Below, in pieces: positions 15,073 through 64,000 of a stretch of 64,000 nucleotides of DNA. The notes under the pieces are model-generated. The model saw nothing but the letters and a program-made list of their open reading frames with translations. It searched no databases and was not told the origin of the DNA. Position 1 is the stretch's first letter, and every line of letters starts with the position of its first letter. The translations under genes were made by a program, and so were the position numbers. The stretch lies in the IMG/VR virus record IMGVR_UViG_3300038441_001119, positions 148,353 through 212,352 of that record. One strand, 5' to 3'.

Positions 15073-15663
15073 TTAAGCAAGCAACTGTTCTGCCTGTGCA
15101 ATGAACTCATCTGGTACGCCGACAGCCTTCAACTCAGCGAACAGTTCGGCTTTGATTCTAGCCTCGTCATCGTTGAGTTCAGGGTCTTCCAGAGTGTCAA
15201 TGGACTCCTTGTTCAGGATGTCCTTAATGAATTCCTCCATGGTAGGAGTGAATTCGGTTTCAGCATCATGGTTAAGCTGGACTTCCATGATGCCAAGAAG
15301 CATTTCGGGCACTGTAGGCTCGTCGAAAGCTCCGTTTACAATGTCTCCAAGGTCTCCGGAGGCGATTGCTATACAAATAGACGAGAACGCCATTGGATTC
15401 TCGAAAAATACCTCCGTAGCGGTCGCAAGGAGGATAGCGTTGAGCTTGTTTTCGACTTCCAGAGGGATTTTGACCGAAAAGTCCTCCTCTAGGTTCGCAA
15501 AAAGCTCCAACGGGTCCATTGGCTCATCGTCGTTAAGAGGATCGCCGTAAATAGCCTCTATTCCGTACTGTTTGAGTACGATAGCATGTAAAGTGGAGGC
15601 GAAGGACTCGGTGTTACCCAGTACTTCCCTCGCCGCGTCCTTATTAAGCTCCCAGTTATTCAT
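15073..15663 (-). CDS. acidic hypothetical protein (196 aa)
   Basis: ORF overlapping the end of 15656..16738; very D/E rich. Confidence 0.7.
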   Translation of the reverse strand: MNNWELNKDAAREVLGNTESFASTLHAIVLKQYGIEAIYGDPLNDDEPMDPLELFANLEEDFSVKIPLEVENKLNAILLATATEVFFENPMAFSSICIAIASGDLGDIVNGAFDEPTVPEMLLGIMEVQLNHDAETEFTPTMEEFIKDILNKESIDTLEDPELNDDEARIKAELFAELKAVGVPDEFIAQAEQLLA

Positions 15664-16738
15664 TTGCAGCCAGCGTTACCCGTACAATATCCTTACGAAT
15701 GTCTGCGTCAAGGCCATTTACGAGTGCGGTGGCTTCAAAAGCGTCGTTTTTGGTCGCTTCAAAGAATTCTTGGACTTTCCCAGAGTTAGGACCAGCAAAA
15801 ACATGGTCAATGGTCTTGGAAGCCACTTTTGTGAAGGCTTCTGCAGGGATAAGGACGTTCTCTTCGTGGAAATAGACCTGCGTGGAGGCATATTTCTCAA
15901 TGACTTCGTCTTCAGCACCTGCGTGGAGGCAGTCATAGGCCGATTGCAGTCTGTGTTCGATTGCAAAGGCATCTTTCACAAGGAAAGTCTCGTCCAGTTC
16001 TTCCCACATAGAGGTAAGTTCAAAGAGATACTCTTCATCAGCACCTGCAGCACTCTTAACGATGTCGTTGTAGAGTTCCAGAGTGTCAGCTTCGACGAAG
16101 TTGGAGCGAAGGCGTACCTGACGTTCAGCATTGCCTGCTTCGAAGATACGTGGAGTACCCATGGTAATCACATCTTGATGGATGTAGTTAAGGTTACCAT
16201 ACTCCTTGGCGGACTTGACGATCTCACGAGCGACGGAGATCGCGATGTCTGCTGGCATACTGTCTTTCTGAGAGAGGAATGCCTTGGCGGACTCTTCGAC
16301 TTGGAAATCGTTGTTCAGTGGAAAGTAACCAAGGGTGTTGCCGTTTTCGTCTTCCATTGAGAAGGCGTACTTAACAAGAGGCTTCTCTTGTGCAGCAGCC
16401 TGTTTAACAACTGCTTCGGCAAAGATATCCTCGACCTTCGTGTAGAAGTCAGACATACCGAAGTTGGCACATGCCTTCTTGATGCGCTGACCAACAACGA
16501 CGTCTCCTTCAGCTTTGCCAAGGAAGTCCATCGCGGAGTAAGCGGTCGTAGTCTGGTCGTAAACAGGATACTGACGATTCAGAGGATCAGCGAAACCTGT
16601 ATTCGAAATGGATGCCAGTTTGGTGATATCAGGCAGATTAGCCTCAGCGACATATGCTGGAAGCTCGCCCTTATCGGTCAGCGTGTCAATCACGTGGAAG
16701 ACAGCGGTAGGGTTATTGGAGTGCAAATAATCTGCCAT
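15656..16738 (-). CDS. K-x-A-motif-rich protein, probable prohead/inner-head component (360 aa)
   Basis: Eight hydrophobic-x-K-x-A motifs like those in the scaffold and protease; own sigma70-like promoter. Confidence 0.6.
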   Translation of the reverse strand: MADYLHSNNPTAVFHVIDTLTDKGELPAYVAEANLPDITKLASISNTGFADPLNRQYPVYDQTTTAYSAMDFLGKAEGDVVVGQRIKKACANFGMSDFYTKVEDIFAEAVVKQAAAQEKPLVKYAFSMEDENGNTLGYFPLNNDFQVEESAKAFLSQKDSMPADIAISVAREIVKSAKEYGNLNYIHQDVITMGTPRIFEAGNAERQVRLRSNFVEADTLELYNDIVKSAAGADEEYLFELTSMWEELDETFLVKDAFAIEHRLQSAYDCLHAGAEDEVIEKYASTQVYFHEENVLIPAEAFTKVASKTIDHVFAGPNSGKVQEFFEATKNDAFEATALVNGLDADIRKDIVRVTLAANE

Positions 16739-44427: not shown

Positions 44428-45420
44428 TTAGACTTCGAAGGCAACTTTGTTGACGCCTGCGACGTTCGCGATGGTCAGACCGATGATCTCTTCAGCAGAG
44501 ATGCGGAGAAGGTCCTTCTTACGCTCAACGTACATGGTGACGTCTTTCAGCGAGTACGCCTTACCGAGGAAGTCTGGCTCAACGAACTGGTAGACTTCGC
44601 CGTCAGCGATCAGATCGCGCTTCATCGTCGCGATGTGAGGGATGCCGAAGAATTTCAGTTCTGGGAGAGCCGAGAGACCTTCAAGGAAGAGGTCTTGCGA
44701 CTTGGTACCACCGACTTCGTCGTGATCGAAACCGAGGAATTCCTTAACCGTCTTGCGGTTGACAAGGAAGACGCCGTTGTTCAGTTCACGGTCTTCGAGG
44801 TGGGACAGAGTGTACTTGCGATAGTTGTCACGAGTGATGGTGACGCCGTTCGTTCCAACAGGCTCGTCCGCACCGCCATCGGTGTAGTCGAAGTTTTGTT
44901 GATAGCCAGCCGCGCCGTTTGCACCGCCCGGAGCACCCACGATGGTGTCAACCCAACCGATGAAGCGATTATCTTCATGGGTTTGGATGTCCTTGAGGGA
45001 GTTATCAACAATAACCTTTTGGAGGTCGATCTTCTTGTAAACCTTCAGCTCGTGAATGTTTTTGGTCCATTCAGGAGTTGCGATTTTGAAGAAGGTCGTG
45101 ACGAAACCTTGGCCACGGAAGTAGTGCGTCCGGTGAGTATCATTCAGCGGAAGCGAGACAGCGCCGGGTTGGTCAGGCTCCATTTCGTCGACAACGTAGA
45201 GGTTGTCTTCGAAGTCTGGGTGACGTCCGAGGTCGTTCGGTCCAACTGGTTTCATCGGGAGAATCCGGCGCATGAAACCGTTTTCACGGAGACGGCGACG
45301 AATTGCGCTACCAGCTGCATCAGATGCCGACTTGTTGAATCCTTCTGGAGCGTCCATGAGGGCGTCAAGAAGGTCCTTGTTGAAGGCTTCAGGATCTTGA
45401 ATAACAATTTTAGGGTCCAT
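44428..45420 (-). CDS. major capsid protein (HK97 fold, 330 aa)
   Basis: IRRRLRENGFMRRILP spine-helix region, FFKIATPEWTKNIHEL; order protease-scaffold-decoration-capsid followed by a terminator. Confidence 0.85.
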   Translation of the reverse strand: MDPKIVIQDPEAFNKDLLDALMDAPEGFNKSASDAAGSAIRRRLRENGFMRRILPMKPVGPNDLGRHPDFEDNLYVVDEMEPDQPGAVSLPLNDTHRTHYFRGQGFVTTFFKIATPEWTKNIHELKVYKKIDLQKVIVDNSLKDIQTHEDNRFIGWVDTIVGAPGGANGAAGYQQNFDYTDGGADEPVGTNGVTITRDNYRKYTLSHLEDRELNNGVFLVNRKTVKEFLGFDHDEVGGTKSQDLFLEGLSALPELKFFGIPHIATMKRDLIADGEVYQFVEPDFLGKAYSLKDVTMYVERKKDLLRISAEEIIGLTIANVAGVNKVAFEV

Positions 45421-46034: not shown

Positions 46035-46508
46035 TCAGCGTTTACGGATGACTGCAGACCAATTGTCCTCGTCGTATACCGTTTGACCGGGTTTGTCTTG
46101 GTTTATTCCTTCAGACGCGCTTTTGGAAAGCGTACCTTCAGAGAAATTGTCGTCTTCGATGAAAGAAGTAGCAATGCTGTCGAGGAGTCGTACTGCTGCC
46201 ATAGGATCTTTCGCAAGATCGCTGCAAGCTGCGGTGGCTGCTCCAGCTTTCACAAAACCTGCTTCTTCGAGGCGCTTCACGATGGGAGCGAGTACGAGTG
46301 GGCTGATTCCGTGAGATGCTACTTTTTCGAGGTAGACCGTTTCCTTGCTGGTAGCCTGTTTGCGCAACTGTACGTTTTCTGCTTCGATTCGCTCCTTTTC
46401 CGCAGCAACCTTATTGAGTTCCTCAAGGGTATCAATGTTGGTTGCTGCGAGATCAGTAACGATGTCGCGCAGCTGCTCGTAAGTCAGATGCTCGGTATTA
46501 GGTTCCAT
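46035..46508 (-). CDS. small scaffold-like protein (157 aa)
   Basis: Coiled coil plus LNKVAA, LRKQAT, LEKVAS, LSKSAS motifs. Confidence 0.6.
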   Translation of the reverse strand: MEPNTEHLTYEQLRDIVTDLAATNIDTLEELNKVAAEKERIEAENVQLRKQATSKETVYLEKVASHGISPLVLAPIVKRLEEAGFVKAGAATAACSDLAKDPMAAVRLLDSIATSFIEDDNFSEGTLSKSASEGINQDKPGQTVYDEDNWSAVIRKR

Positions 46509-46526: not shown

Positions 46527-47633
46527 TTACTTGTTCTTTTTGCTGATCTTTTCGAAGAGGCTCTTCGAACCAGAGATCAGGGTCTGGACAGAAGCCATCT
46601 TCACAGCTTCTTCTGGGGCTGGTGCGCCTTCGCCACCTTCTGGAGCAGGAGCGCCACCAGCGGCTGGATCACCACCTGCGCCACCTTCGGAGGCGAGGAG
46701 TTCCTGAGCGATTTGCGAAGCGGTGGCTTCGTCGAGTTCGCCAGAGGAAACAGCGGCTTCAAGGAGAGCGAGAATTTGCTCAAGGGACGGCTCTTCTGCG
46801 CCTTCGATGGTAGGCTCGCCACCCTCTTCTTCAGCACCCATCATGGCACCAGCGTCAGCAACGCCTTGGTCATATGCGCACTTTTCAAAGTAGGTAAGAC
46901 CATCACAGTTTGCTTCGTGGGCGAGGGCGACCTTAACAAGGTGCTCGCCTTCTGCAGGAGTGTCTGCCGAGTTATAAAGGTTTTCGAAATACTGTTCACG
47001 AGCAGCAGCATACTTGCGCATTTCTTCGTGTTCACGAGCAGCAGCAGCTTGCTTTTCGAGCATCTCGTTGTAGTCAGCCGAGGCTTGTTTGACGAGTTGA
47101 GCGGCCATTTCGCGACCGAGTTGCTTACGAACAAGCGGAAGGACCATGTCGATACCTTCTTCGGTTTCAAAGATAGCGGAAGCTAGCTTCATCATAGCGT
47201 CACCATCGAGGGTAAGCGCAGGCTCAGAAGGAGCAGCGGACTTGGTGGTAACAGGAGCAGCGGCGGGAGCAGGCTCGGTAACAGCAGGGGAAGCAGACTT
47301 GGTGCGAAGGTTCTTCACACGAGCAAGAATGTCACTCGCGGACTTCTTGACATTAGTTTGCTTGTCTTGTGCATCACCGTCAGCAGCCGAAGGAACGTCC
47401 TTACCAGTACGAGCTGGGTTGGTGTCCTTGTCAGTGAGGTCCTTACCTTCGCGGGAAGCGTTGGTAGGATCAGCTGGAAGGTTTTGCTTGTCTTTAGATG
47501 CGTCCGGATCGGTTGGGATACCAGCGGTGCCCTTTTCAGTCGGGTCACTTGCAGTAGCCGCAGCAGCCTTTTTGCTTTGAAGGCGAGCCGAGATACGGTT
47601 CTTGATGTCTGATTGGGTGACGGTATTAGCCAT
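46527..47633 (-). CDS. prohead scaffolding protein (368 aa)
   Basis: Low-complexity A/E/P/K protein between protease and capsid; 11 K-x-A motifs. Confidence 0.7.
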   Translation of the reverse strand: MANTVTQSDIKNRISARLQSKKAAAATASDPTEKGTAGIPTDPDASKDKQNLPADPTNASREGKDLTDKDTNPARTGKDVPSAADGDAQDKQTNVKKSASDILARVKNLRTKSASPAVTEPAPAAAPVTTKSAAPSEPALTLDGDAMMKLASAIFETEEGIDMVLPLVRKQLGREMAAQLVKQASADYNEMLEKQAAAAREHEEMRKYAAAREQYFENLYNSADTPAEGEHLVKVALAHEANCDGLTYFEKCAYDQGVADAGAMMGAEEEGGEPTIEGAEEPSLEQILALLEAAVSSGELDEATASQIAQELLASEGGAGGDPAAGGAPAPEGGEGAPAPEEAVKMASVQTLISGSKSLFEKISKKNK

Positions 47634-47691: not shown

Positions 47692-49143
47692 TTAACTGTT
47701 ACGATAAAAGTTCATCGCAACAAAGGTCTTAGCCAAAAGATCTTGGTCTTCAAACCCACGCTTAACCATGTCTTCAAAAGCAGCTACCTGATATGCAGCG
47801 TACGATTGTTCGAAGATGTCCAGAGAACGTGTCTTGTCATACTCAGCAAAGCCAGTATTAGCAGAACCGCTCTTGATTATGATAGTGATGGTCTTTTGTT
47901 GAGTAGGCTCCATCTTGCAGGAGAACTTCTGTGCCATCTCTTCCATGATACCATCGACTTCATCGCTGTCTTCTGGATCACAATCGGAAGCCTTCTTACC
48001 AAAGCCACTGAACAGAGGAGTCAATTCATCAAGCGTAGCATCGCACTGCTCGTCTTTGAGCATAGAGTTGTGGATGTTGGCCAGCTTGACAACTTCACCA
48101 TCGTAACCAGCATACTCGAACAACTCTTTCGCGGGAAGTAGTGCTGCGGTTTCAGCAAGCTTACCGAAGAGTGTACCGGGACGGAGGCTGGCAACTTTCT
48201 TGAAGTCACCATTGAGAGTGTTGTCTTGGCATGCAGTCTTCAACACGGAGAAGAAGTAGTGCCACTCAGGGTCGTTGCGCTTCTGTTTGAGATTATCAGC
48301 AAACCAAGTCTCTGCAGCAGCAAGCTTAACAAGGGTGTCCTTGAAATCAGAAATGGTACGAGTACGCACTCCCTCAAGTTCCGCAGCTAGATAGCCGGGA
48401 ATGATGATAGAACTGGTATCAGCAGAGGCCGCCTTCTTCATTTCCTCGTCCTCGGAGAACTTGTAAGCAATATAGTGCGCAATACGATCAGCAGGGCGTC
48501 CTACACGACTGATATCGAAGAACCGTGGCTCGTCGTTGATCGCAAAGGCGTACTTCTTGAAGGTAGGGATGTATTGTCCCATGTGTTTCTTCAAGTGGTC
48601 ACAATATGCAGCAGCACTCTTAGCCATGTTGCCGCAGCAGGAGCAACGGTCATGCTTGAGACGGGCGGACATACTGTAGGCAAGTTCTTTGCCTTGTTTA
48701 GCAAGTTCGTACTCTTCAGCAGCCTTCTTCTTGTGACCGTGCACCAGAAGTTCAACACGATCCAGCGGCTTGTTATAGGCAGACTTTACAATCGTACCAA
48801 TAGCAAGAGACGGATCTTCGTGGCGATGTTCCCGATAGAAGTGGCCGTGTTTAACAAAGGTGTCGTGGTACTTCTCCAGAGACGCACTGGGGAATGCGTC
48901 TTGGTTACGGTTAGGAGGGTACGTAGGCCACCCACCCAGCGCAATAACGTGCTGCATGAAGTGGTCTTTGTCAGGCTTATGCGCCTCGTAGTCCTCCTCA
49001 GTGAAGATGCTGTGGTAATCCGCAGAGGCGCTCTTCATCATACCCTTATTCTCAATGAGGGTATTGAAATGACCGCCAATCGCAGCAAGAAGGGATTCCT
49101 GCGCGTCCTGATAGATTACCTTAGTGAGTCCGTAATGATCCAT
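47692..49143 (-). CDS. prohead maturation protease (HK97-type Ser-His) with Cys/His Zn motif
   Basis: NRNQDAFP, YREHRHED (His), AYSMSA (Ser), CSCCGN...YCDH; position upstream of scaffold and capsid. Confidence 0.8.
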   Translation of the reverse strand: MDHYGLTKVIYQDAQESLLAAIGGHFNTLIENKGMMKSASADYHSIFTEEDYEAHKPDKDHFMQHVIALGGWPTYPPNRNQDAFPSASLEKYHDTFVKHGHFYREHRHEDPSLAIGTIVKSAYNKPLDRVELLVHGHKKKAAEEYELAKQGKELAYSMSARLKHDRCSCCGNMAKSAAAYCDHLKKHMGQYIPTFKKYAFAINDEPRFFDISRVGRPADRIAHYIAYKFSEDEEMKKAASADTSSIIIPGYLAAELEGVRTRTISDFKDTLVKLAAAETWFADNLKQKRNDPEWHYFFSVLKTACQDNTLNGDFKKVASLRPGTLFGKLAETAALLPAKELFEYAGYDGEVVKLANIHNSMLKDEQCDATLDELTPLFSGFGKKASDCDPEDSDEVDGIMEEMAQKFSCKMEPTQQKTITIIIKSGSANTGFAEYDKTRSLDIFEQSYAAYQVAAFEDMVKRGFEDQDLLAKTFVAMNFYRNS

Positions 49144-50182: not shown

Positions 50183-51751
50183 TTAACCGATTTTGTATTT
50201 CTTCTCGTCGAGCTTCTGTTGCTCCACTTCCGACTGGGTTTGCTTCTTGTTGATGTCCACCAACTGATCGTAGGTGTGAGGAGCAACGCCGTCATATTGG
50301 ATAGCTTCACGAAGAGTGTAGCTCATGAGGTTAGGATCAGCCATCAGCGCAGGGTTCGCGCTTGCAAGGCTGTTGTAGATACTGACGACCCGGTCAGGAT
50401 CTGCTTCCGAGAGGATTGGGTCAGTGAGGATAGCCTTCTGTAGGAGAAGAGCTTTCTGAAGATCACTGCGGGTACCGTCAATAGCCATACGACGTTTGTC
50501 CATACCGCCAGCTGGGGTAGACATACGACGCTTCAGCCACTCGTAAGCAGGAGTGGTTTTGGAATCAAGCCATTCAACACCTTTGTCGAGCTTCTTGAGA
50601 GCAGGATCGAAGTCAGTCTTAGGAGCAGGAGTAGCCCGTCGCTCATGTTGCGCATCAGTATCCGTAAACCTTACATTGGAAGGTGCCGGACCTACGCCCG
50701 ACTGAGGATTGACTTCATCGGGGATAGGAGGACCTTGACGTGGCTCCGGTGTAGCGCCTAATGCTGACCTCCAGTCTTTTTTCTCCGGAGCAGGTTCACC
50801 CTTAGCTGGCTCTTTGGACTTGGTAATCTTTGGATTGCTCTTAGGAGGTCCATAGTGTACGTAGCCCTTAGGATCGAAATCTTGTGACTCTGCTCCGAGG
50901 GTAGCCCGTGCAATGTCTTCGTCAGTGAATGGCTCACCGTCGTCTTCTTCTTCCTCATCAGCAGCTTCCTTGAGCATGGACTCACACTCAAGATACTCAG
51001 TGATCTTGCTTTCAAGTTCCGTGATCAGATCAAGCTTACCAGTCGTGTCACGGGTGATCTTGACCGATGCCTTCTTCTCCATAGGGAAGCGATCATACTG
51101 AACCATCGAATATTCCTTACCAAGCTGCCATGCAATATGTGCCAGAGCTTGTTCATTGGCGTTCTCACAGGAAAGCGAATCACGCTCCCAAGCAGAATAC
51201 AGGGAAGGATTGAGATACACTTCGTGAGCCAGTTTCTTCATGGACTCTGAGATCTCGTCACGGACATTACCCATGTAGTCTTCCACACCTTGGATGAAGA
51301 GTTTGTCATTTTTCTCTGCTTCAAGACGTGCGGATCTCTCGGCAATCTCACGCAGAGACGTGGTAAACTCATCGCCTACAAAGGCAGAGGCACTCTTAAC
51401 GGAACCGTCCTCGTCATTGAACATGGCCTTAAGATTAGGCACACGGTAGACGTCGTGGTTCACTGAAACGTGCGATGCTTTCTTGACCGTCGCTCCCGGT
51501 GCTTGGTAAGAAGTATACTTTTCGATTACTTCGTCCACTGGGATCAGCGAGAAGGTACCGCCACGAGAAGCCGACTTCTTCATGTACGATACCGTTTTGG
51601 CCGTATTGAAAACCTGACACAGACGCTCCAATTGCGCGGGAGCAAGTTGGTTGTCCTGTGCGTACTTAATAAGAACATCACCGGGATCACCGGATTTGTT
51701 GAAAGTCGACACAAGGGACTCAATGATAGAGGCTGCCTTGGAGTGGGTCAT
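50183..51751 (-). CDS. K-x-A-rich prohead core/inner-body protein (522 aa)
   Basis: Seven K-x-A motifs in the N-terminal half; acidic/Pro-rich linker; own promoter. Confidence 0.6.
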   Translation of the reverse strand: MTHSKAASIIESLVSTFNKSGDPGDVLIKYAQDNQLAPAQLERLCQVFNTAKTVSYMKKSASRGGTFSLIPVDEVIEKYTSYQAPGATVKKASHVSVNHDVYRVPNLKAMFNDEDGSVKSASAFVGDEFTTSLREIAERSARLEAEKNDKLFIQGVEDYMGNVRDEISESMKKLAHEVYLNPSLYSAWERDSLSCENANEQALAHIAWQLGKEYSMVQYDRFPMEKKASVKITRDTTGKLDLITELESKITEYLECESMLKEAADEEEEDDGEPFTDEDIARATLGAESQDFDPKGYVHYGPPKSNPKITKSKEPAKGEPAPEKKDWRSALGATPEPRQGPPIPDEVNPQSGVGPAPSNVRFTDTDAQHERRATPAPKTDFDPALKKLDKGVEWLDSKTTPAYEWLKRRMSTPAGGMDKRRMAIDGTRSDLQKALLLQKAILTDPILSEADPDRVVSIYNSLASANPALMADPNLMSYTLREAIQYDGVAPHTYDQLVDINKKQTQSEVEQQKLDEKKYKIG

Positions 51752-54099: not shown

Positions 54100-56367
54100 T
54101 TAAAGTGGTGCTGATCCCTCAATGTCGCTATTCCGCTTGATTAGTTCAAGCAAAATATCACCGAAAGATTTAAATTGTGAAACGAGGTTGTTCTCGATGT
54201 TCGTCATGTCATCCGAACCGTAGAGCTTCTCGAAGTCCGAAGGTTTCCAGTAGAACAAGAAGATAAGCCGCCCGAAATGGTCCAGCCCTTCCTCAAGCTT
54301 TGGAATGTACTTGGCGATCATCGAGGCACTGTCGTACGTCGAAATGAGTAGACCAGTGACACCCGGATCAATCAGATTGGCGACCCCACCTTGTTGTGCC
54401 ATCTGTGCAAGCTCTTCAGGAGACGATCCCAGAAGCATGTCGTCGGTGAATCCAGCCTTCTTACCATCCTTGGACACAAACCGTGACTCAGGTCCTTGAT
54501 CCTTTGGATTTGGATCATAGAAGTCACCAAGACGGCGGTTAGGTGGAACAGGTTGATCAGTTTCCGACTGCAGGGCGAACTGCTGTGGATTCTCCATAGG
54601 AACATTCAGATCCTGATCGTAATCAGTCTGCCATTCAGGAGTATTCACAATACGGATGTTCGTTGCACGCTTGACCAGTTCAACACGATCAACGAGGAAC
54701 TCAACAGAACCTTTCTCGCTGAGAAGGTCCATCATTGCGGTCACTTCTGCACCGGGAATGAGGAAAGAGTGGGCCACTTTGACAGCAGCGGTTTCCACAT
54801 CGTCCACTTCATCCCAATCCTTGTCGTTGAGCTTGATCTTAACGGCTTTGTTACCGGTTTCGTCCTTACCTTTCAGGGATACCTTGTCGATACCCTGATC
54901 GTAGAAGAACTGCCACAGTTGCTCTTGACCGCCCAGCTTATGCGGGCATTCCTTGGCATCATGTCGCTCACTGTCGTACTTACATACTTCAGTAGCCACA
55001 GGAAGGAACTTCACATCACCATTGAATACATTGGACTCACTCTTGCTGAGATAGCGGTCGTAGGAGATCACCGGAGAGTTCTCATTGCGGTAAGCAACGG
55101 CTCCATTGGTAAGATTGATCACAAGAACCCCATCAGAACGCTTCTTGGTGGATGCGACATGGAAGGGAGCTGATACAGAACCATTGCGGGTGTTGACCGC
55201 GACGTTACCACCATTGGAAGGTTTGTCTTTCAGTTCCTCATCGAACGCCCACTGTTGCTTCTTGTCCTCAAGCGGAGAGCCAAGGATACGGGTGACATAG
55301 TCTTTGTAGTAGTTACCATCCTTGAAGATGACAACTTTGGAGAGACCTTGCGAAGACTGGGTGTAGCCAGAACGTGGTGCACAGTCCAGAGAGCAGCAAC
55401 CATCACGTTCCATCTGGAATCCAACAAAGGCTTTTCGTTCCTTACCATCAGAGCAGATCACATTGTAGAAGCCCGGCTCAGACACTTCTGCAGCACAGTC
55501 TTCCACATTGGCGATCACTGGTTTGAGGTCCAGCTCCTTACGTGCATCAACAAGCATCCATCCACGCTTATAACCAAGATGTTTGTCTTCGCTGGAAGCA
55601 TCTTTAATCAGTTCAAACTCACCTGTGTAGAGAGTGAGGTCTGCATCAGGGAGAATGGTTTCGGAAGCCTTCTTGATCGTGTAAGCCTCTTCTGCGGTAG
55701 GAGTAGGTGCCCATACTTCTTCGTCAAGGGACACAACAGCCTCTGCGAATGGGAAACTGATTTCAATGGCATGAGCAAGCTTCTCCATGGCGTCGTCTTC
55801 ATACAGAAGGAAGTCGCGAAGCATTGGTGCTGGAGCAGCTGACTTGGTGCCAGATGCATTCTTCTCCATCTCAGAGAAGACATCTTCCCAAGCAACCTTG
55901 ATGTCCTCCGCCGCACTCTTGTTCATCCAAGGATTGGCAAGTCGCTCAAGGCGCATACCGGGGCGCATCTTGGAGGTCATATCTTCCGATTGACCCTGAC
56001 CTGCAACCTCCGTCGAATAACGGGAAACAAGGTGTTGCGTCCACTCTGCGGTAAGCGGTTTGAAGAGCTTCTTGTTATGCTCGTACAGAAGCTCGGTACC
56101 CTTGACGTCTCCAGTGATGAAGAAGCAGGGAACAGAGAAAAGATTCTTTGCAATACGGAAGGCGAAGATACCTGCCATCTTCGTATTGTCATCATTCGAG
56201 TAAACCACTTCGAATCCCAGACGGTGCGGATCATCCAGAAGAGGACCTGCCTTTTGGGAGATGTAGTTGTAAGCGAGGTCCATGAAAGCACGCTCGACGT
56301 CCTCGGCATATCCGCCTGCGGCCATCTGTGCTGCTGCTTTCTTCCAGTCGTAGTCAAGGATGCTCAT
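54100..56367 (-). CDS. large K-x-A-rich head-associated protein (755 aa)
   Basis: Nine K-x-A motifs (MNKSAA, MEKNAS, MEKLAH, LIKDAS, LVKRAT and others); no portal signature recognised. Confidence 0.55.
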   Translation of the reverse strand: MSILDYDWKKAAAQMAAGGYAEDVERAFMDLAYNYISQKAGPLLDDPHRLGFEVVYSNDDNTKMAGIFAFRIAKNLFSVPCFFITGDVKGTELLYEHNKKLFKPLTAEWTQHLVSRYSTEVAGQGQSEDMTSKMRPGMRLERLANPWMNKSAAEDIKVAWEDVFSEMEKNASGTKSAAPAPMLRDFLLYEDDAMEKLAHAIEISFPFAEAVVSLDEEVWAPTPTAEEAYTIKKASETILPDADLTLYTGEFELIKDASSEDKHLGYKRGWMLVDARKELDLKPVIANVEDCAAEVSEPGFYNVICSDGKERKAFVGFQMERDGCCSLDCAPRSGYTQSSQGLSKVVIFKDGNYYKDYVTRILGSPLEDKKQQWAFDEELKDKPSNGGNVAVNTRNGSVSAPFHVASTKKRSDGVLVINLTNGAVAYRNENSPVISYDRYLSKSESNVFNGDVKFLPVATEVCKYDSERHDAKECPHKLGGQEQLWQFFYDQGIDKVSLKGKDETGNKAVKIKLNDKDWDEVDDVETAAVKVAHSFLIPGAEVTAMMDLLSEKGSVEFLVDRVELVKRATNIRIVNTPEWQTDYDQDLNVPMENPQQFALQSETDQPVPPNRRLGDFYDPNPKDQGPESRFVSKDGKKAGFTDDMLLGSSPEELAQMAQQGGVANLIDPGVTGLLISTYDSASMIAKYIPKLEEGLDHFGRLIFLFYWKPSDFEKLYGSDDMTNIENNLVSQFKSFGDILLELIKRNSDIEGSAPL

Positions 56368-57803: not shown

Positions 57804-59411
57804 TTAAACGAATGGAAGACCTGCGTAGCGACCAACGATACCGTGGCGACCTTGTTGACGGATGCTAGGGTCTTGGAGACCTTGACCCATTATGCCTCGA
57901 AGCTGCGAAGGATCAAACTCATAGTTACCCATCAGACGTCCAATGAAACCGGTGTTCTGTGCTTGATTCTGCGCAAGACCATAGCCTTGTCCAAGACCTT
58001 GGTCCAGACCAGTCGCATAACCGGCTTGGTTGCCTTTCTCATACCCAGTTCCACGACCAAGTGCCCACAGACCTGCTCCACCTGCTCCAATAGCAGTGTT
58101 CTTCATCCATGGAGTCTGGTTGAAGGTACGTCCAGCTCTGCGAAGACCTGCGTAACCTTTACCAATCATGGAAGTGGGACGAAGACCTCTGGAACCAGCT
58201 CCAAGGAGACCAGCGACATTGGCGGATTTAATGAAAGAGGACTTGGTCATCGGATTGTTCTTTAACTCTGCAACTCTAGCACGGATGTCGTCAGGAGACA
58301 ATTGGCGAATTGCGGAAATGACGGGATCGGTAAGGTTGTTCTTCAGACCAGAGTTTCCAATGGAGTCTTCAGCGAATCTGAGACCACGTGCAGTGTTCTC
58401 TCTAAGCGCAATGTCCTGCAGCTTGGCTTTGTCGCGATTCATATACGGACCGAGGCTCTCGAATGCTGGCATCTTTATATCCTTGAGGAAATCAGCATTC
58501 AGATTACCCTGAGTCCGAAGGCGTTCGCTCAGAGAAGGTCCTTCTGACTTGCGAACAAGCATCTGTGCAATAGGCGACATCTGCGAAACCTTATCGGTCA
58601 TCGCCGTATGTGCGCCTGTTGTAGCCTTGTTCAGCTTATCGGAGATGTCGTTCTTAGCGTCATTGCTTCTGCGATACGCAAAGCCACCACCAAGACCAGC
58701 ACCCAATGCACCTCCTCCAAGAGCACCCATAAGGAGCATCTTGAGACGCTTGCCTTTGTACTTCTCGTCAGTGAGGGAAGTGAGACCACCACCAATAGCT
58801 CCAAGACCTGCACCTGCAATACCACCAGCAAGACCTCCTTTGAAAGCCATGTCAGCTGGGTTGAAAGGATGCACGTTTACGTCAGCTTGTTTTTTCATAG
58901 CGTCATGTTGATTGTTACGATATGCGTTAATGGCGCTGGAACCGATCCCGCCAGCAAACATACCACCAAGACCGGATAGCTCACCGACACTACGGCTCAT
59001 GGCTTTCATCATCAATGCCTGTCTTCGCTTACCTAAACGGCCCCTGCCCATTTGCATCCATCCTTGTGGATTCTTTTGAATAGTTCGGTGCACAACGGAT
59101 GGTCCGAGGTATTTACCAAGGAGTTTACCAATAGCATGACCACCACCTACGCCAAGGCCAGCAATCATCCCGTTACCAACAGGAGACTTGTTCTCATCAG
59201 AGCGTAGCTGGTTGATCCCTTCCATAGCCCCACCTGCTCCAGCGCCCCATAGAGCACTGTTACCAACTTGAATACTAGGATCACCGACAAGATCCTTCAG
59301 ACCCTTGAACGGGTTGCGGAGTGGTGTCTTTGGTTTAGTAGCAGCGCGAGAAGCGAAGTCCTCTATACGAGCCAGTGTACCTGCTGATTTAATCAACTTA
59401 GAAGTTTTCAT
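57804..59411 (-). CDS. modular glycine-zipper internal-head polyprotein (535 aa)
   Basis: Three Gly-zipper modules opened by MKTSKLIKSAG, MKKQAD and MTKSSFIKSAN. Confidence 0.6.
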   Translation of the reverse strand: MKTSKLIKSAGTLARIEDFASRAATKPKTPLRNPFKGLKDLVGDPSIQVGNSALWGAGAGGAMEGINQLRSDENKSPVGNGMIAGLGVGGGHAIGKLLGKYLGPSVVHRTIQKNPQGWMQMGRGRLGKRRQALMMKAMSRSVGELSGLGGMFAGGIGSSAINAYRNNQHDAMKKQADVNVHPFNPADMAFKGGLAGGIAGAGLGAIGGGLTSLTDEKYKGKRLKMLLMGALGGGALGAGLGGGFAYRRSNDAKNDISDKLNKATTGAHTAMTDKVSQMSPIAQMLVRKSEGPSLSERLRTQGNLNADFLKDIKMPAFESLGPYMNRDKAKLQDIALRENTARGLRFAEDSIGNSGLKNNLTDPVISAIRQLSPDDIRARVAELKNNPMTKSSFIKSANVAGLLGAGSRGLRPTSMIGKGYAGLRRAGRTFNQTPWMKNTAIGAGGAGLWALGRGTGYEKGNQAGYATGLDQGLGQGYGLAQNQAQNTGFIGRLMGNYEFDPSQLRGIMGQGLQDPSIRQQGRHGIVGRYAGLPFV

Positions 59412-60163
59412 TGTTTGTCAAAGCCACCCATGCGCTCTTTGATGGAGTGAAGTAGTTGTGGAGCAGCCATACTCAGAGCATAAGTAGGAATACCAACAAA
59501 GGAACGAAGGGAAGAGGTACGATTGTGACCGTGATTGCGCATCATACGGTAACCTCTGCGTGAAGCATCAAGTTCTGAGAGCATGGTAACTCCCAGACCT
59601 GCGGTACCAATATTAGCTCCATTTTGGCTACCTTCATTGGTAGCAGCAAAGCCAGTTATACCTGCACCAAGACCGCCGACATATTTACCAATGGCATTCG
59701 CCCATCCAAGAGCTTTACCTCCATGAGCGTGTCCCATTTCATGCGCAAGGACAGCAGGATCGGCGTGTCTACCAAATGGTTTCTTTGGTCCCATAAACAT
59801 GGACATGAACGGGTCATCGCTACCGTAGTAGCCACTATGGCCTTTGGTGTAAGGCATATTTACAGAGCCGTCACCGGGATTGTAATGAGGCGGCTTACTG
59901 CCAAAGTTAACAGGTGTCCCCTCTTTCTTTGCCCGTCCTACCAGACTATCAAACGTAGACTGCGCCTGCGCCCCTCTATCGACGTCCTTGATGATATGCC
60001 GTCCGTAGATGTGATTGGGTATACTGATCAACTTCTCAGCTATAGGAGTACCCGCAAGTCCCCAACGCCAATCCAATCCTTCATTGTCCCCACGCAGAAG
60101 ATCACCTACAAAACCACCACGTGGGGCTTCATTTGCTCTCTTGATGAACTCAGATTTTGTCAT
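59408..60163 (-). CDS. HEXXH zinc metallopeptidase (YugP/Zn_peptidase_2-like) with CTS-like leader
   Basis: AVLAHEMGHA, hydrophobic segments, ELDASRRG third-ligand motif; N-terminus MTKSEFIKRAN. Confidence 0.7.
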   Translation of the reverse strand: MTKSEFIKRANEAPRGGFVGDLLRGDNEGLDWRWGLAGTPIAEKLISIPNHIYGRHIIKDVDRGAQAQSTFDSLVGRAKKEGTPVNFGSKPPHYNPGDGSVNMPYTKGHSGYYGSDDPFMSMFMGPKKPFGRHADPAVLAHEMGHAHGGKALGWANAIGKYVGGLGAGITGFAATNEGSQNGANIGTAGLGVTMLSELDASRRGYRMMRNHGHNRTSSLRSFVGIPTYALSMAAPQLLHSIKERMGGFDKQ

Positions 60164-60245: not shown

Positions 60246-60584
60246 TTAGCTCAGGACAAGGAAAGTAACTTTTGTAGCAGCAGTGGCGTTCGCGTTACCG
60301 GTAATGGTAAAGGAGCCATCAGCAGGAACCACGGATTTGAGATACAGGAGAGTACCATCGGTGGAGTTCAGAGTAGCTAGAATACGGGAACTGGAGGTAA
60401 CAAGGCTATTGGTCACGACCACAGAGGCAGCGCCGATAGCGATTTGAACCTGACCAGAGTATTCGTTGATTGTTTGGGCACCAGTCGTATCCGCATTGGT
60501 ACCAGTGTAGAGACGTTCGTTGATCAGATTGGCAAGAGCCGTGATGATCCGAGACTTAGTGCGAGGAAGGACAGGAAATGCCAT
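60246..60584 (-). CDS. small beta-rich virion protein (decoration/fibre-like, 112 aa)
   Basis: SVVVTNSLVTSSSRILAT...GSFTITG beta pattern; bracketed by its own promoter and terminator. Confidence 0.55.
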   Translation of the reverse strand: MAFPVLPRTKSRIITALANLINERLYTGTNADTTGAQTINEYSGQVQIAIGAASVVVTNSLVTSSSRILATLNSTDGTLLYLKSVVPADGSFTITGNANATAATKVTFLVLS

Positions 60585-60621: not shown

Positions 60622-61218
60622 TTAAAGTCGCATATCCCTTTCAATGCGGCGGTAATTGGGACCGTAGGCAGGGGCTTTCTCTTTTGGTTTCCCTATGACT
60701 CCACCTCTGCTGTTATGGGAGACAACGCGGAACTCACCGTCTTCCCAGAGAACCCATGGAAGTCCACTATCACCTGCTCGGACTCCTTCACCGCTCTTAT
60801 GGAAATCACTGACATATTCGGAGCTGTTCCTGTTCTCAAGACGAGCGAGAATGAACTCACCATCTTGTGTAGCGATTGCAATAGGTTGTCTGTTCTTAGG
60901 AGAGAGTGCAATGTTCTTGCGAACCTTTACTGGGAAGTCAGGCTCCACAAAACACCAACTGGTATCATTACCGAGATCCTTCACAAGCATGATGGTGTGC
61001 TCAGTGACAGTACCATCGTTCTGCACAGTGTTCACAGTCTGCCCGACACTTGGGTGCAGATGAGTGGCAGTAACCATCTCATTGGAAGAGCGAACCCATC
61101 CCTTGAGGTGCGGGTACGCGTTGGAGCGGACAATGAAGTCCTTCTTGAGGTTCTTCCATTTGACCTTTGGTTCACGCAGGGAGTAGAACCAATTCAGTAG
61201 TTTCTTTTTAAGACTCAC
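60622..61218 (-). CDS. trypsin/chymotrypsin-fold serine protease (198 aa)
   Basis: Catalytic triad motifs MVTATH, GNDTSW, GDSGLP, plus VVSHNSRG. Confidence 0.7.
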   Translation of the reverse strand: MSLKKKLLNWFYSLREPKVKWKNLKKDFIVRSNAYPHLKGWVRSSNEMVTATHLHPSVGQTVNTVQNDGTVTEHTIMLVKDLGNDTSWCFVEPDFPVKVRKNIALSPKNRQPIAIATQDGEFILARLENRNSSEYVSDFHKSGEGVRAGDSGLPWVLWEDGEFRVVSHNSRGGVIGKPKEKAPAYGPNYRRIERDMRL

Positions 61219-63236
61219 AGGGCAGAGAGTGCCAGAGCAGACGGATGAGTCAACATTATAAATGCGCTCTTTGTCTGTTCCTTCTTCTCGATGCTCTTCT
61301 GAATGGCGTACTCCTGTTTGTAGGCATCTTGTGGTTTCTTGTGCTTGCCGAGAATACGTTTACCATCCTTGGTGTACAGAACCCACTGGTTGCTTCCCAC
61401 TTGTTTAACCACAGCGGACTTCACTACATTGTCTTTGTAGAAGTTATCCATCTTGGAGAGATCAATACCGAACTTTGGTGCATAAGCGTATGGCTTGCTG
61501 TTGCTCCACGTCCTTGGATTCCACCATTTCCTTGTAGGATGTGCTGTCACAGGATAACCGGCATTTGGTAAGGCTTTGGTCCACACTTTGGCTGCGTCGT
61601 CACTTGTAGCGCCTCCTCTGTCAGAGTAGAACCACTTCCCTGCATTCCCTGCCTTGTAATCCCTGTATGCGTCCCGAATAGCGGCTCCGTACATCTTCTT
61701 ACCATAGCCCATGCCTCTCAACTTACCACTAAGACGCGACGATGAGATGTAAGTGTTGTTGTCTGCTTTATTGGTGAACGAAGCTAGGTGTCCTTTATGG
61801 ATGTCACCTACTGAAAGCTCATTGGTACGCCAGTTGGTGAGCCTGTTGGGATTAACAGGAGCTTCTGAGACCATTCTACGAATAAGACCAGCTCTTGCAG
61901 CTGCTTTCACCATTGATGCATTCAGATCGTCGTCAGTAGCTCTTACAGCAGGGATCTTCTTCCTGCCTTCGTCATTCGCCCGGTGGTATCTGTGTCTGCC
62001 ATCCACAAGGCTACCGTCTGGTCCAATAATGACAGGCTTTTTCGTATCCACTTTGTCATAACGTTTCTTGGAGTAACCAGTACGTTTGGAACGGTCTGGC
62101 CTTGGAATGTCTGAAAGCTTTGTGTGTACAGACTTCTGTTTCTTGAGCCTGTCATTCAATGCAAGGATGTCAATGTTGCGACCATCCTTCATCACTTTGG
62201 TATGCGTGGTGGTTGTCTTGACGTCAGCTGACTTTAACCGATCATACCCTTCGTAACCGGCGTACCCTGTTCCTGCCAAGCCTGCTGCACCAATAGGAGC
62301 ATCTCTATACCAGAATTTGTTCCTTGCCTTACGCAAAGCATCCATACCACTGATACCAGCTTTGGCAGCAGCTCTATATTCTTCTGAGCCTACTTGTCCT
62401 TTGATACCAGATCTACTGGCAACACGATCCATGATGCGGTCTCGTTCTGCCCTAACTTTTGCCCCATTTGCCGCTCTAGTACTACTGTACATCGCATTCA
62501 TGATTTCCTCACTAGCTCTGTATCGTTCCTCGCCCGGCAGCCATCCATCTAAACGGCGATCATTTGGAGGTTTTTGGAAATATCTAGGGGTGTGTTTTCT
62601 TTTACCGAACCCTTCAAATGGTGCATCAAAAGCGATACTGTCTCGACGACCGCCCGTATGGTGTTTTGATGGTCCATTTAATCGAGTAAAGTTCATCACA
62701 GGAACTCCCCAATCAGACTGTAAAGAACGTTGATCGGTTGTCCAAGAGTTGTCTGCATGAATAGTGGAGGAGTGTCTTGGATCCCCCATCTCAGTGCGCA
62801 TCTTACCTTTACGATCAAACTTGGAAGCCTGATCAAGTTGCTTACTGATGTCCTTAGACTGAGAGCCGAACAACTTAACCTTATCCAACTTCTTGTCCAC
62901 ATTATTGCGCCCAATAATGTCAGCAATAGATGGTTTCAATTTAGAACGAATTCCTTCTGCCTCCTTCAATGCGGGAGACAGTCTGGTAAGCAATTCTCGG
63001 AATCCAGCTTGCTTATTCATCAACACACCAATAGGAATGTCCCTGCGATTGGTATGTATCTTGAACTTGGTAGGAGTATGGGTCAATCCCATGTATTTAC
63101 CTTTAGGATCATCCACAAGCCAGTCCTTCGGAGATGCCTGCATTTGTTTACGCAGGATATCCGCCTTGGCTCCGTACTGCTTCTGATCAGACAACTGTTT
63201 GGCTCTCAGCAGCGCATATAGAACTGCTGGTTCCAT
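61215..63236 (-). CDS. polyvalent protein with ParB-like and GNAT domains (673 aa)
   Basis: KPVIIGPDGSLVDGRHRY (ParB N-terminal), LRGMGYGKKMY (GNAT motif A); domains separated by K-x-A motifs. Confidence 0.7.
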   Translation of the reverse strand: MEPAVLYALLRAKQLSDQKQYGAKADILRKQMQASPKDWLVDDPKGKYMGLTHTPTKFKIHTNRRDIPIGVLMNKQAGFRELLTRLSPALKEAEGIRSKLKPSIADIIGRNNVDKKLDKVKLFGSQSKDISKQLDQASKFDRKGKMRTEMGDPRHSSTIHADNSWTTDQRSLQSDWGVPVMNFTRLNGPSKHHTGGRRDSIAFDAPFEGFGKRKHTPRYFQKPPNDRRLDGWLPGEERYRASEEIMNAMYSSTRAANGAKVRAERDRIMDRVASRSGIKGQVGSEEYRAAAKAGISGMDALRKARNKFWYRDAPIGAAGLAGTGYAGYEGYDRLKSADVKTTTTHTKVMKDGRNIDILALNDRLKKQKSVHTKLSDIPRPDRSKRTGYSKKRYDKVDTKKPVIIGPDGSLVDGRHRYHRANDEGRKKIPAVRATDDDLNASMVKAAARAGLIRRMVSEAPVNPNRLTNWRTNELSVGDIHKGHLASFTNKADNNTYISSSRLSGKLRGMGYGKKMYGAAIRDAYRDYKAGNAGKWFYSDRGGATSDDAAKVWTKALPNAGYPVTAHPTRKWWNPRTWSNSKPYAYAPKFGIDLSKMDNFYKDNVVKSAVVKQVGSNQWVLYTKDGKRILGKHKKPQDAYKQEYAIQKSIEKKEQTKSAFIMLTHPSALALSAL

Positions 63237-64000
63237 TATGACATTCTCTGCATATAGTTCATGACCATATGAGGATTAGCGTTCTTGCCGTAGTTGAACA
63301 TAATGTCATTCACAACCGTAGGACTACTATATGAAGTAGAACCAGCACCTGCGTTCATCAAACCAATGTTCTTACGTGCTATTGCCTGATCCTTGAAATG
63401 ATAAGGACGCTGATGCAGATATGACTGCTTGGCTGCTTGAGAAAATTGTCCCATTTTACGCGTATCCCAAAGATGCTGCACATTGTCATTACGTAATGGT
63501 CCAGTAAGCTTACCCAGACCTTTATGCATTAACGTTCCGCCAAGTTCCGGATTAACATTTCGACCGAAGCTACTCAACACACCCCACCTATTGGCACTCT
63601 TGGTCAACCCAACAGACTGCATGATCTGCTTACCGGGAGAAATAGGTTTCTTCACTGGAGGCACTGTACCAAACGGAGAGTTACCTGTAACGCCTTGGTA
63701 AGCAGCCAAACCAACAGGAGCAGCAACAGCGGTACCCAGTCCAACATGCCCCAAGTTAATGTTTTGATGCCAAGGAGCCTTCGCAGGTGCGGCATTAACG
63801 TACATACTGTCCGGAAGAGTTTTGTTCTGGATAGCCCTCAGCATTGGGCTATTCTGCGGGTACAGTTGCGTCACACCGGGAGTGCTGGCAGGAGGTTGCC
63901 ATGCAGGAGTCCTAGGAAGTGGTGGCCTGTGCAGGACACCTGAGGGAGCCTTTGGAGGACGGACTCTTGAGAGCCACTTGCCGCGATTCACTTTACCAAT
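63236..64000 (-). CDS. Pro/Gly-rich probable internal-head protein, 5' end probably outside the window
   Basis: Frame is open up to the window edge; LTKSAN motif and GLGTAVAAPVGLAAY hydrophobic segment. Confidence 0.5.
   Translation of the reverse strand: MGKVNRGKWLSRVRPPKAPSGVLHRPPLPRTPAWQPPASTPGVTQLYPQNSPMLRAIQNKTLPDSMYVNAAPAKAPWHQNINLGHVGLGTAVAAPVGLAAYQGVTGNSPFGTVPPVKKPISPGKQIMQSVGLTKSANRWGVLSSFGRNVNPELGGTLMHKGLGKLTGPLRNDNVQHLWDTRKMGQFSQAAKQSYLHQRPYHFKDQAIARKNIGLMNAGAGSTSYSSPTVVNDIMFNYGKNANPHMVMNYMQRMS

Follow-up and report, generated by a model that had tools for sequence, protein, structure and literature searches.

The window analyzed here, the final 64 kb of a single 212,352-bp contig (G000; IMG/VR record IMGVR_UViG_3300038441_001119), encodes a 673-residue protein, P0001, that is modular and carries a three-residue motif, Lys-x-Ala (K-x-A), at the borders of its modules. 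Two of the modules have recognizable folds, one ParB/sulfiredoxin-like (ParB/Srx-like) and one GNAT. The motif is conserved at the corresponding borders in relatives of P0001 and is concentrated in head-assembly proteins. Comparison of these sequences leads us to lean, with slightly better than even confidence, toward P0001 being a polyvalent cargo polyprotein that would be taken into the prohead, cut at K-x-A by the prohead protease, and injected in pieces.

The phage itself is an uncultured soil phage of roughly 212 kb. Its distant relatives include Salmonella phage Arash and Vibrio phage D69, of a lineage with RNA polymerase subunits in the virion. In a sequencing-run search, the contig DNA was found in soil metagenomes only, and no RNA run carrying it was found.

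Modular Organization of P0001

The open reading frame (ORF) at 61215-63236 on the minus strand, proposed in the initial annotation, was confirmed from the ORF list and its translation, and each motif quoted there was found in its place. The gene overlaps both of its neighbors, its start codon with the stop of the upstream ORF (63236-63991) and its stop codon with the start of the one that follows (60622-61218), which places it in a tightly packed co-directional block; 219 of the 251 long ORFs of the contig lie on the minus strand.

An exhaustive HMMER profile search returned 536 relatives, which match four separate stretches of P0001. Module borders were taken from a realignment of the best 149 of the 536 relatives, comprising 194 homology stretches; each of these homologues represents a cluster at 50% identity, and they are not entirely independent of one another. 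By homology, module A spans about residues (aa) 1-75 (91 stretches), module B about aa 341-443 (56 stretches), module C about aa 491-603 (19 stretches), and module D about aa 603-657 (28 stretches), and the borders defined in this way fall at aa 72, 341, 443, 603, and 657. The features of the gene are as follows.

61215-63236, minus strand: whole gene P0001, polyvalent modular protein (ORF list, translation)
63012-63236, minus strand: module A, aa 1-75, mobile, unnamed (91 homology stretches, median end aa 72)
63003-63020, minus strand: K-x-A site 1, MNKQAG, aa 73-78 (K75, A77), at the end of module A
62955-62972, minus strand: K-x-A site ALKEAE, aa 89-94 (K91), not at a module border, poor match to the consensus
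62241-63002, minus strand: orphan basic stretch, aa 79-332 (aa 78-337 by the profile search), net charge about +16
62223-62240, minus strand: K-x-A site 2, RLKSAD, aa 333-338 (K335, A337), just before module B in a low-confidence linker
61905-62216, minus strand: module B, predicted ParB/sulfiredoxin-like, aa 341-444 (AlphaFold2, Foldseek, VIA-align, profile against SbnI)
61896-61913, minus strand: K-x-A site 3, MVKAAA, aa 442-447 (K444, A446), between the ParB-like and GNAT folds
61431-61886, minus strand: module C, predicted GNAT fold, aa 451-602 (AlphaFold2, Foldseek, VIA-align, weak Pfam Acetyltransf_1)
61410-61427, minus strand: K-x-A site 4, VVKSAV, aa 604-609 (K606, A608), at the junction of GNAT and module D in a linker of low model confidence (predicted local distance difference test, pLDDT)
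61278-61412, minus strand: module D, small, basic, weakly DUF2188-like, aa 609-653 (module D alignment, Pfam on relatives)
61260-61277, minus strand: K-x-A site 5, QTKSAF, aa 654-659 (K656, A658), after module D
61218-61259, minus strand: C-terminal tail, aa 660-673, IMLTHPSALALSAL (translation)

The modules are reshuffled among relatives, where the architectures A, B, C, AB, DA, AD, BA, AC, CAB, and DBA occur, and in long relatives they stand beside InPase, LigD_N, SNF2 helicase, DNA ligase, and GNAT domains. This recurrence in shuffled order beside such domains bears out the name polyvalent protein given to P0001 at the outset, the class being that of PMC5512222. P0001 holds at least two unrelated effector-type domains, the ParB/Srx-like and GNAT folds, together with two further mobile modules and an orphan stretch. 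Every segment of the protein is basic. No second copy of any of its modules was found in this genome, and no zincin-like metallopeptidase domain, HExxH motif, or RNA polymerase hub domain was found within P0001.

Searches with the entire protein were poorly informative. Neither a ParB nor a GNAT family was matched by whole P0001 in Pfam, PHROGs, or NCBIfam, where two unnamed PHROGs were the only matches; tblastn against 50,697 phage records gave no match, and a word-index protein search returned P0001 alone. Against the same phage records, module A gave no tblastn match, and module B gave a single weak one to a "parB-like protein" (E 0.01).

Module A matched no Pfam family, and a search of the ESM Atlas with it gave no usable match, the Atlas model of P0001 being poor. 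Its alignment contains the invariant residues A12, S16, Y21, K24, H53, and H61. For module D, a weak, sub-threshold match to DUF2188 (PF09954) was obtained in 7 of 29 relatives (best E 3.7e-4); P0001 itself gave no match. The orphan stretch matched nothing in Pfam, and a region-restricted search with aa 80-333 returned P0001 alone. Homology coverage is missing over about aa 130-300, and few module A or B stretches extend into aa 78-130 and 300-337.

Predicted Folds of Modules B and C

Modules B and C were modeled separately by AlphaFold, with one alignment each. The model of module B is confident over aa 341-444 (mean pLDDT 87.8). Its top 50 Foldseek matches all belong to the ParB/Srx group (ParB, Noc, KorB, sulfiredoxin, SbnI, and the serine kinase SerK; best E 1.5e-3). 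The VIA-align Z scores, at most 6.8 over about 75 residues, are middling taken alone. The sequence VDGRHRY lies at aa 411-417 of P0001, and its D-G-R-H-R core, which fits the Arg-containing active-site motif of the superfamily (DGxHR / GxxR type), is invariant across the 31 aligned module B sequences. The best PDB profile match of the module is SbnI (E 0.35), with the invariant DGRHR aligned to the DGVHR of SbnI. No Pfam ParB family (ParBc, DdrB-like ParB) was detected at E up to 0.1 in the 31 module B members. Because the Foldseek list is exclusive and the signature motif aligns, we accept a ParB/Srx-like fold for module B, which at the level of the predicted fold is a member of this group.

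The model of module C (pLDDT 83.2) begins with strands from aa 451 and has a confident core at aa 465-602. All of its top 50 Foldseek matches are GNAT proteins, GCN5 being found at E 1.7e-4, and VIA-align superimposes it on AtaT with Z 11.5 and a root-mean-square deviation (rmsd) of 2.8 over 121 residues. The sequence RGMGYGKKMY at aa 507-516 contains motif A (general form Q/R-x-x-G-x-G/A, here R-x-x-G-x-G, R507-G-M-G-Y-G512), the acetyl-CoA pyrophosphate loop, whose glycines are 90-100% conserved across 20 module C sequences. The PDB profile of the module matches two GNATs, 1r57 and 1y9k, on this same loop, and sub-threshold Acetyltransf_1 matches were obtained in 7 of the 20 members (best E 0.002). 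The module can thus be firmly predicted to have a GNAT fold. KacT, TacT, Elp3, Naa10, and GCN5 lie within about 1 Z of AtaT, and since the top structural matches are tied in this way, the substrate of module C cannot be read from them. Many GNATs carry a tyrosine in motif B; where many of them have it, the module C family has a nearly invariant Trp.

The two domain names of the initial annotation have therefore fared well: the GNAT call firmly, through the exclusive Foldseek list, the Z score of 11.5, and the presence of R-x-x-G-x-G, and the ParB-like call at fold level, through its Foldseek list and the alignment of DGRHR with SbnI.

K-x-A Motifs at the Module Borders

P0001 contains six K-x-A sites, the sixth, ALKEAE, being absent from the list of the initial annotation. 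Five of the six (K75, K335, K444, K606, and K656) lie 0-5 residues from homology borders, for which random placement gives P of about 5.5e-5; the borders were set after the data had been seen, yet they come from an independent source, the medians of homology-stretch ends. The AlphaFold confidence drops at the K-x-A borders, and the folded parts extend over about aa 341-444 and about aa 451/465-602. It had been claimed that K-x-A sites bound the domains, and a divergence between predicted domain boundaries and motifs had been named as the observation that would speak against it. Structure prediction of modules B and C, combined with homology, places the boundaries at the motifs, so the claim withstands this comparison. 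Genome-wide, 357 K-x-A occur against 328 expected; this is barely above expectation, and the signal is therefore local.

The homologues repeat the arrangement. K-x-A occurs within 14 residues of the extrapolated borders, for which the background is 0.197, with the following frequencies.

Border before module A: 56 of 80 homologues
Border after module A: 57 of 79 homologues
Border before module B: 30 of 39 homologues
Border after module B: 16 of 37 homologues
Border before module D: 22 of 23 homologues
Border after module D: 21 of 27 homologues

The offsets of these K-x-A relative to the sites of P0001 itself center on 0. At the position of RLKSAD, homologues carry (N/V)KSA(E/D), and in the module D alignment, the K and A of VVKSAV are at least 90% conserved. 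QTKSAF resembles "KSAFIK.A", an element found in relatives at the N-termini of proteins and behind module D. In relatives with an internal module A, the Ala of K-x-A aligns with Met1 of P0001, so that the natural N-terminus coincides with a putative cut. In four long relatives, the K-x-A sites lie mostly between Pfam domains.

In the 16 residues outside the conserved module cores of the 149 shuffled homologues, K-x-A ranks first of 400 X-x-Y patterns, being present in 60% of 325 flanks against a background of 11.7% (5.1-fold); the runner-up, K-x-S, reaches 2.6-fold. Inside the cores, K-x-A is depleted to 0.46 (B), 0.13 (C), and 0.29 (D) of expectation.

The Same Motif in Head-Assembly Proteins

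The case for cleavage at K-x-A is purely comparative: the motif is concentrated in scaffold-like proteins, in a protease-like protein, and at the capsid N-terminus, which suggests a prohead-protease recognition site. The relevant genes are listed below.

47692-49143, minus strand: prohead-protease-like protein, 483 aa, 14 K-x-A sites, candidate enzyme
46527-47633, minus strand: scaffold-like protein, 368 aa, 12 hydrophobic-x-K-x-A-S/A sites
46035-46508, minus strand: scaffold-like protein, 157 aa, 4 hydrophobic-x-K-x-A-S/A sites
45322-45339, minus strand: FNKSAS, aa 28-33 of the major capsid protein (gene 44428-45420; PHROG major head protein)
50183-51751: further K-x-A-dense ORF of the head module, 8 sites
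54100-56367: further K-x-A-dense ORF, 13 sites
15656-16738, minus strand: 360-aa protein far from the head module, 9 K-x-A including IVKSAK, IVKSAA, and VVKQAA

The 483-aa protein is enriched in K-x-A relative to its own composition (P 4e-4). It matches PHROG 18299, "head maturation protease" (E 3.8e-5), and, by tblastn, the annotated prohead proteases of phages E3, Pupper, and G, and the ESM Atlas gives the lead Peptidase_S77/S80. On the PHROG match, these annotations, and the Atlas lead, we assign it with modest confidence as prohead-protease-like. The 360-aa protein at 15656-16738, also enriched relative to its composition (P 0.002), may be another protease substrate or scaffold-like protein.

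In the major capsid protein, the motif near the N-terminus is kept in most of 74 homologues of 36-74% identity (K in 64, A in 63, and S or A at the next position in 72), and the middle residue varies freely. In the capsid homologues P0188, P0190-P0192, P0203, P0205, and P0209, the N-terminus is extended, and the extension contains a second K-x-A (LTKEAG, QVKSAA, MVKEAA) that precedes the conserved K-x-A-S.

The nearest cultured relatives, Salmonella phage Arash and Vibrio phages D69, D181, and D148, have capsid proteins of about 27% identity to that of this phage. Arash gp220 contains 10 K-x-A in 307 aa, gp223 8 in 255, and gp225 7 in 200; D69 0268 contains 11 in 311 aa and 0271 10 in 269, and 0273 follows the pattern. 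At aa 25-30, the capsid proteins read LVKEAG in Arash and LTKEAG in D69.

An extended consensus, hydrophobic-x-K-x-A-S/A, was learned from the scaffold-like proteins, and the sites of P0001 were scored against it as percentiles. The fit is good for K444, K656, and K75, and MVKAAA (K444) is the best match in P0001, at the 97th percentile.

We propose that K-x-A at each module junction would be a recognition site of the prohead maturation protease of the phage. The cut would fall after Ala, giving K-x-A followed by S, A, G, or V; it is placed there by analogy with the prohead protease of SPN3US, which uses a P3-x-P1 motif with Ser at P1'. P0001 would enter the prohead together with neighbors that bear leader peptides ending in K-x-A, and would be cut into pieces of about 77, 260, 109, 162, and 50 residues plus a 15-residue tail, the pieces having about 6-29 kDa. 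These would stay with the DNA and be injected as separate early effectors, in which case the ParB/Srx piece may act on nucleotides or DNA and the GNAT piece may acetylate a host molecule. What we infer comprises the cleavage itself, the enzyme responsible and the bond it cuts, the packaging and injection of the pieces, and their targets.

Weighing the Proposal

Several results weigh against this proposal. The number of K-x-A in P0001 is unremarkable, with 6 sites where its Lys and Ala content predicts 7.1, which puts it at rank 120 among 251 ORFs, and a simple excess in P0001 was rejected on this count. The cores of module A are not depleted of the motif. At the start of module D, K-x-A is kept even in stand-alone genes (MNKSAV, MLKQAV), so it could there be part of the module D fold. 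The fit to the extended consensus is poor for K335 and K91 (both at the 46th percentile), and K606 reaches only the 72nd percentile. P0001 starts with MEPAVLY, directly in module A, and has no N-terminal targeting leader or propeptide, unlike its neighbors. The Pfam thresholds support neither named domain, as module B matched no Pfam family and Acetyltransf_1 scored 13.7 bits on P0001 against a gathering cutoff of 20.7. The candidate enzyme at 47692-49143 has no Pfam or NCBIfam match, and a PDB sequence search with it gave chance-level matches only (E 0.19 or worse). In SPN3US, the prohead protease removes N-terminal propeptides that mostly leave the head (PMC10052503). Finally, the phage is known from soil metagenomes only.

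Some of these points would also be expected if K-x-A were not cut at all and were a junction or capping signature of linkers exchanged together with the module cassettes, P0001 then acting as one multidomain protein. The ordinary count, the persistence of the motif in stand-alone module D genes, and the poor consensus fit of several sites agree with such a role, as does the general richness of the flanks in K and A, which exceed background 1.35-fold and 1.51-fold, respectively. However, flank composition alone predicts about a two-fold excess and not a five-fold one, and no other X.Y pair comes near K.A. The motif flanks three unrelated modules as well as unrelated Pfam domains, it is avoided inside cores B, C, and D, it is repeated in scaffold-like proteins of phages whose capsids share only 27% identity, and at the capsid N-terminus it is conserved with a free middle residue. 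A linker signature of this kind is therefore unlikely in our judgment, though it deserves some weight.

Neighboring Genes and Links to the Virion

The gene for P0001 lies directly upstream of a portal-to-capsid block that holds the protease-like and capsid genes. The following genes nearby are of interest.

57804-59411, minus strand: 535-aa protein, starts with MKTSKLIKSAG and has an internal MTKSSFIKSAN at about aa 385-397
59408-60163, minus strand: 251-aa protein, starts with MTKSEFIKRAN, has a HEMGH zincin-like motif and then Gly-rich hydrophobic segments

The first ORF of the contig (189-623, minus strand, outside the window) starts with MTKSAFIKRAN. These three leaders, MKTSKLIKSAG, MTKSEFIKRAN, and MTKSAFIKRAN, are near-identical, end in K-x-A, and look like capsid-targeting propeptides in their sequence.

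The 535-aa protein repeats its leader internally, as though two leader-bearing proteins had fused, and hydrophobic Gly/Ala runs such as GGLAGGIAGAGLGAIGGGL are very frequent in it. Homology links its C-terminal part to that of a polyvalent homologue of P0001, P0002, in which it is therefore fused to modules. Among the cargo-like genes, a 112-aa protein (60246-60584, minus strand) matches K1-lyase_C of Pfam below threshold (E 5e-5; 24.1 bits, the cutoff being 27). At the end of the contig, the ORF at 63236-63991 is still open, so the contig may be circularly permuted and the cargo cluster may span its ends.

In the syntenic metagenomic relative L002, proteins start with MLKSAFIKAAG and MLKQAVVEKEG. 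The place of P0001 is taken there by P0002, a differently shuffled polyvalent protein (order C-A-B plus a Gly-rich part); downstream of it are encoded homologues of the protease and of the 755-aa, 317-aa, and 522-aa proteins. In a further homologue, P0008, a 309-aa N-terminal fragment of RNA polymerase beta is fused to modules A and D and to a short segment with DGRHR that has diverged too far to be scored as module B. The polymerase fragment is 51% identical to a 482-aa protein of the present genome (contig 116147-117595, minus strand, outside the window), and the initial 309 or so residues of that protein match the N-terminal part of Arash gp206, an RNA polymerase beta subunit. The RNA polymerase homology ends at VIKSAS (aa 305-310) in the 482-aa protein and at FEKRAA in P0008. 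About 170 more residues follow VIKSAS in the 482-aa protein, in what appears to be another polyprotein-like arrangement, this time involving a polymerase fragment. Arash gp206 is the most abundant Arash virion protein by mass spectrometry (PMC10585845); the virion proteome table gives coverage and spectral counts, which do not report cleavage. The protein (L001 3210-7787) begins with MPKSAS, that is, with K-x-A-S at its very N-terminus. The signs that the modules may travel with virion proteins are circumstantial and consistent with one another.

These links bear on a second alternative, in which P0001 is not virion cargo: whether cleaved or intact, it would be synthesized in the infected cell and serve there, perhaps in replication or in taking over the host. 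Phage proteins that are not packaged can also contain ParB-like and GNAT domains, and this, together with the missing leader of P0001, would suit such a role. On the other side stand the position of the gene in a co-directional, overlapping block directly upstream of the head genes and between leader-bearing genes, the differently shuffled polyvalent protein at the same place in L002, and the fusion of the modules to a virion RNA polymerase fragment. We consider a purely intracellular role quite improbable.

The 251-aa HEMGH protein is a possible metallopeptidase beside the polyvalent protein. It has a weak Zn_peptidase_2 match (E 0.13) that does not cover the HExxH motif, and no relative or family of it was found by PHROG and NCBIfam searches, phage tblastn, or a PDB sequence search. 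That K-x-A is instead the cleavage signal of another protease such as this one, in the capsid or after injection, is very doubtful: its HEMGH motif and Pfam match, its own leader ending in K-x-A, and the metallopeptidase processing proposed for polyvalent proteins in PMC5512222 speak for it, but the protein has no detectable family, the Pfam match misses its active-site-like motif, and K-x-A also fills scaffold-like and serine-protease-like proteins and the capsid N-terminus, the classical substrates of a prohead protease.

Implications

Polyvalent proteins are believed to reach the host along with the phage DNA. How one long polyvalent chain yields effectors with different targets has so far been a matter of conjecture, namely, autoprocessing by a metallopeptidase, as put forward in PMC5512222. 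If the K-x-A motifs are indeed prohead-protease sites, the protease that matures the capsid would at the same time process polyproteins, and a release site of its own would accompany each module, which would account for the free exchange of modules. A P1 Ala with a P3 Lys would be new for phage prohead proteases, so far known to cut after Glu. A simple sequence rule would follow, by which domains separated by the motif predict the injected early effectors of uncultured jumbo phages, and the ParB-like, GNAT, A, and D modules would become defined units that can be expressed and tested against bacterial defenses.

A broader generalization may hold as well, although we place it just short of an even chance. 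A large, mostly uncultured clade of 120-230 kb phages from soil and sea, to which the Arash-like and D69-like phages belong, would rely on a prohead protease of a new specificity, recognizing Lys-x-Ala followed by Ser or Ala. Their polyvalent proteins would be true polyproteins, the modules of which (ParB-like, GNAT, InPase, ligase, helicase, and RNA polymerase fragments) would shuffle freely because each carries its own K-x-A junction, and the capsid protease would free the injected effectors.

Comparison with Known Systems

Polyvalent proteins, their ParB-like and GNAT modules, and the processing of head cargo by prohead proteases are already known. In the literature searched, neither a conserved K-x-A junction between polyvalent-protein modules nor a prohead-protease motif of the K-x-A kind was found.

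The polyvalent proteins of phages and conjugative elements, such as DdrB of phage P1, were described by Iyer, Burroughs, Anand, de Souza, and Aravind in 2017 (PMC5512222), with autoprocessing by a metallopeptidase domain proposed for them. They resemble P0001 in joining several unrelated effector domains in one chain, in the recurrence of ParB/Srx and GNAT domains, and in having genes near virion genes. P0001 differs from them in having neither a metallopeptidase nor an RNA polymerase hub domain; its ParB-like module lies outside Pfam ParBc, its module A is unnamed, and its module D is weakly DUF2188-like. Searched for terms of cleavage and processing, the text of PMC5512222 describes no conserved inter-domain motif, and the word "linker" is absent from it.

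Module C has its fold in common with the GNAT toxins AtaT, KacT, and TacT and with Elp3, Naa10, and GCN5 (Z 11.5-10.6, rmsd 2.1-4.2, 103-136 residues), but the identity to these toxins and other GNATs is only 10-16%. Unlike the toxins, module C has no evident antitoxin partner.

The internal proteins of phage T4 reportedly carry a capsid-targeting leader, MKTYQEFIAE, which ends in a gp21 site. The leaders MTKSEFIKRA-N and MKTSKLIKSA-G of this phage recall it in length and layout, a likeness that serves as a lead only. The T4 gp21 cleavage motif differs from K-x-A, and P0001 itself has no such leader.

The maturation and release sites of herpesvirus assemblin have the form (V/L/I)-x-A followed by S, and a common fold is ascribed to assemblin and the gp21-type prohead proteases of T4. 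These sites and K-x-A-S would have in common a small Ala at P1 with Ser after it, with Lys here replacing the aliphatic residue two positions before Ala. The protease of this phage is tied to the assemblin/gp21 clan through the weak Atlas lead Peptidase_S77/S80.

A further parallel to the proposed processing is provided by the head ejection and internal proteins of phiKZ and SPN3US, two giant phages whose prohead protease cuts at A/S/G-X-E. In SPN3US, cleavage follows A-X-E (P3-P2-P1) with Ser preferred at P1' (PMC10052503). Common to these phages and the present one is the recurrence of a three-residue P3-x-P1 motif in the protease itself and in proteins of the capsid, portal, scaffold-like, and ejected kinds. 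The virion of Arash, a relative of the present lineage, also contains RNA polymerase subunits. The motif of this phage, with a putative P3 Lys and P1 Ala predicted from sequence, differs from the A-x-E of SPN3US. In contrast to the removal of propeptides in SPN3US, the K-x-A sites of P0001 separate folded modules, and several products would therefore be kept.

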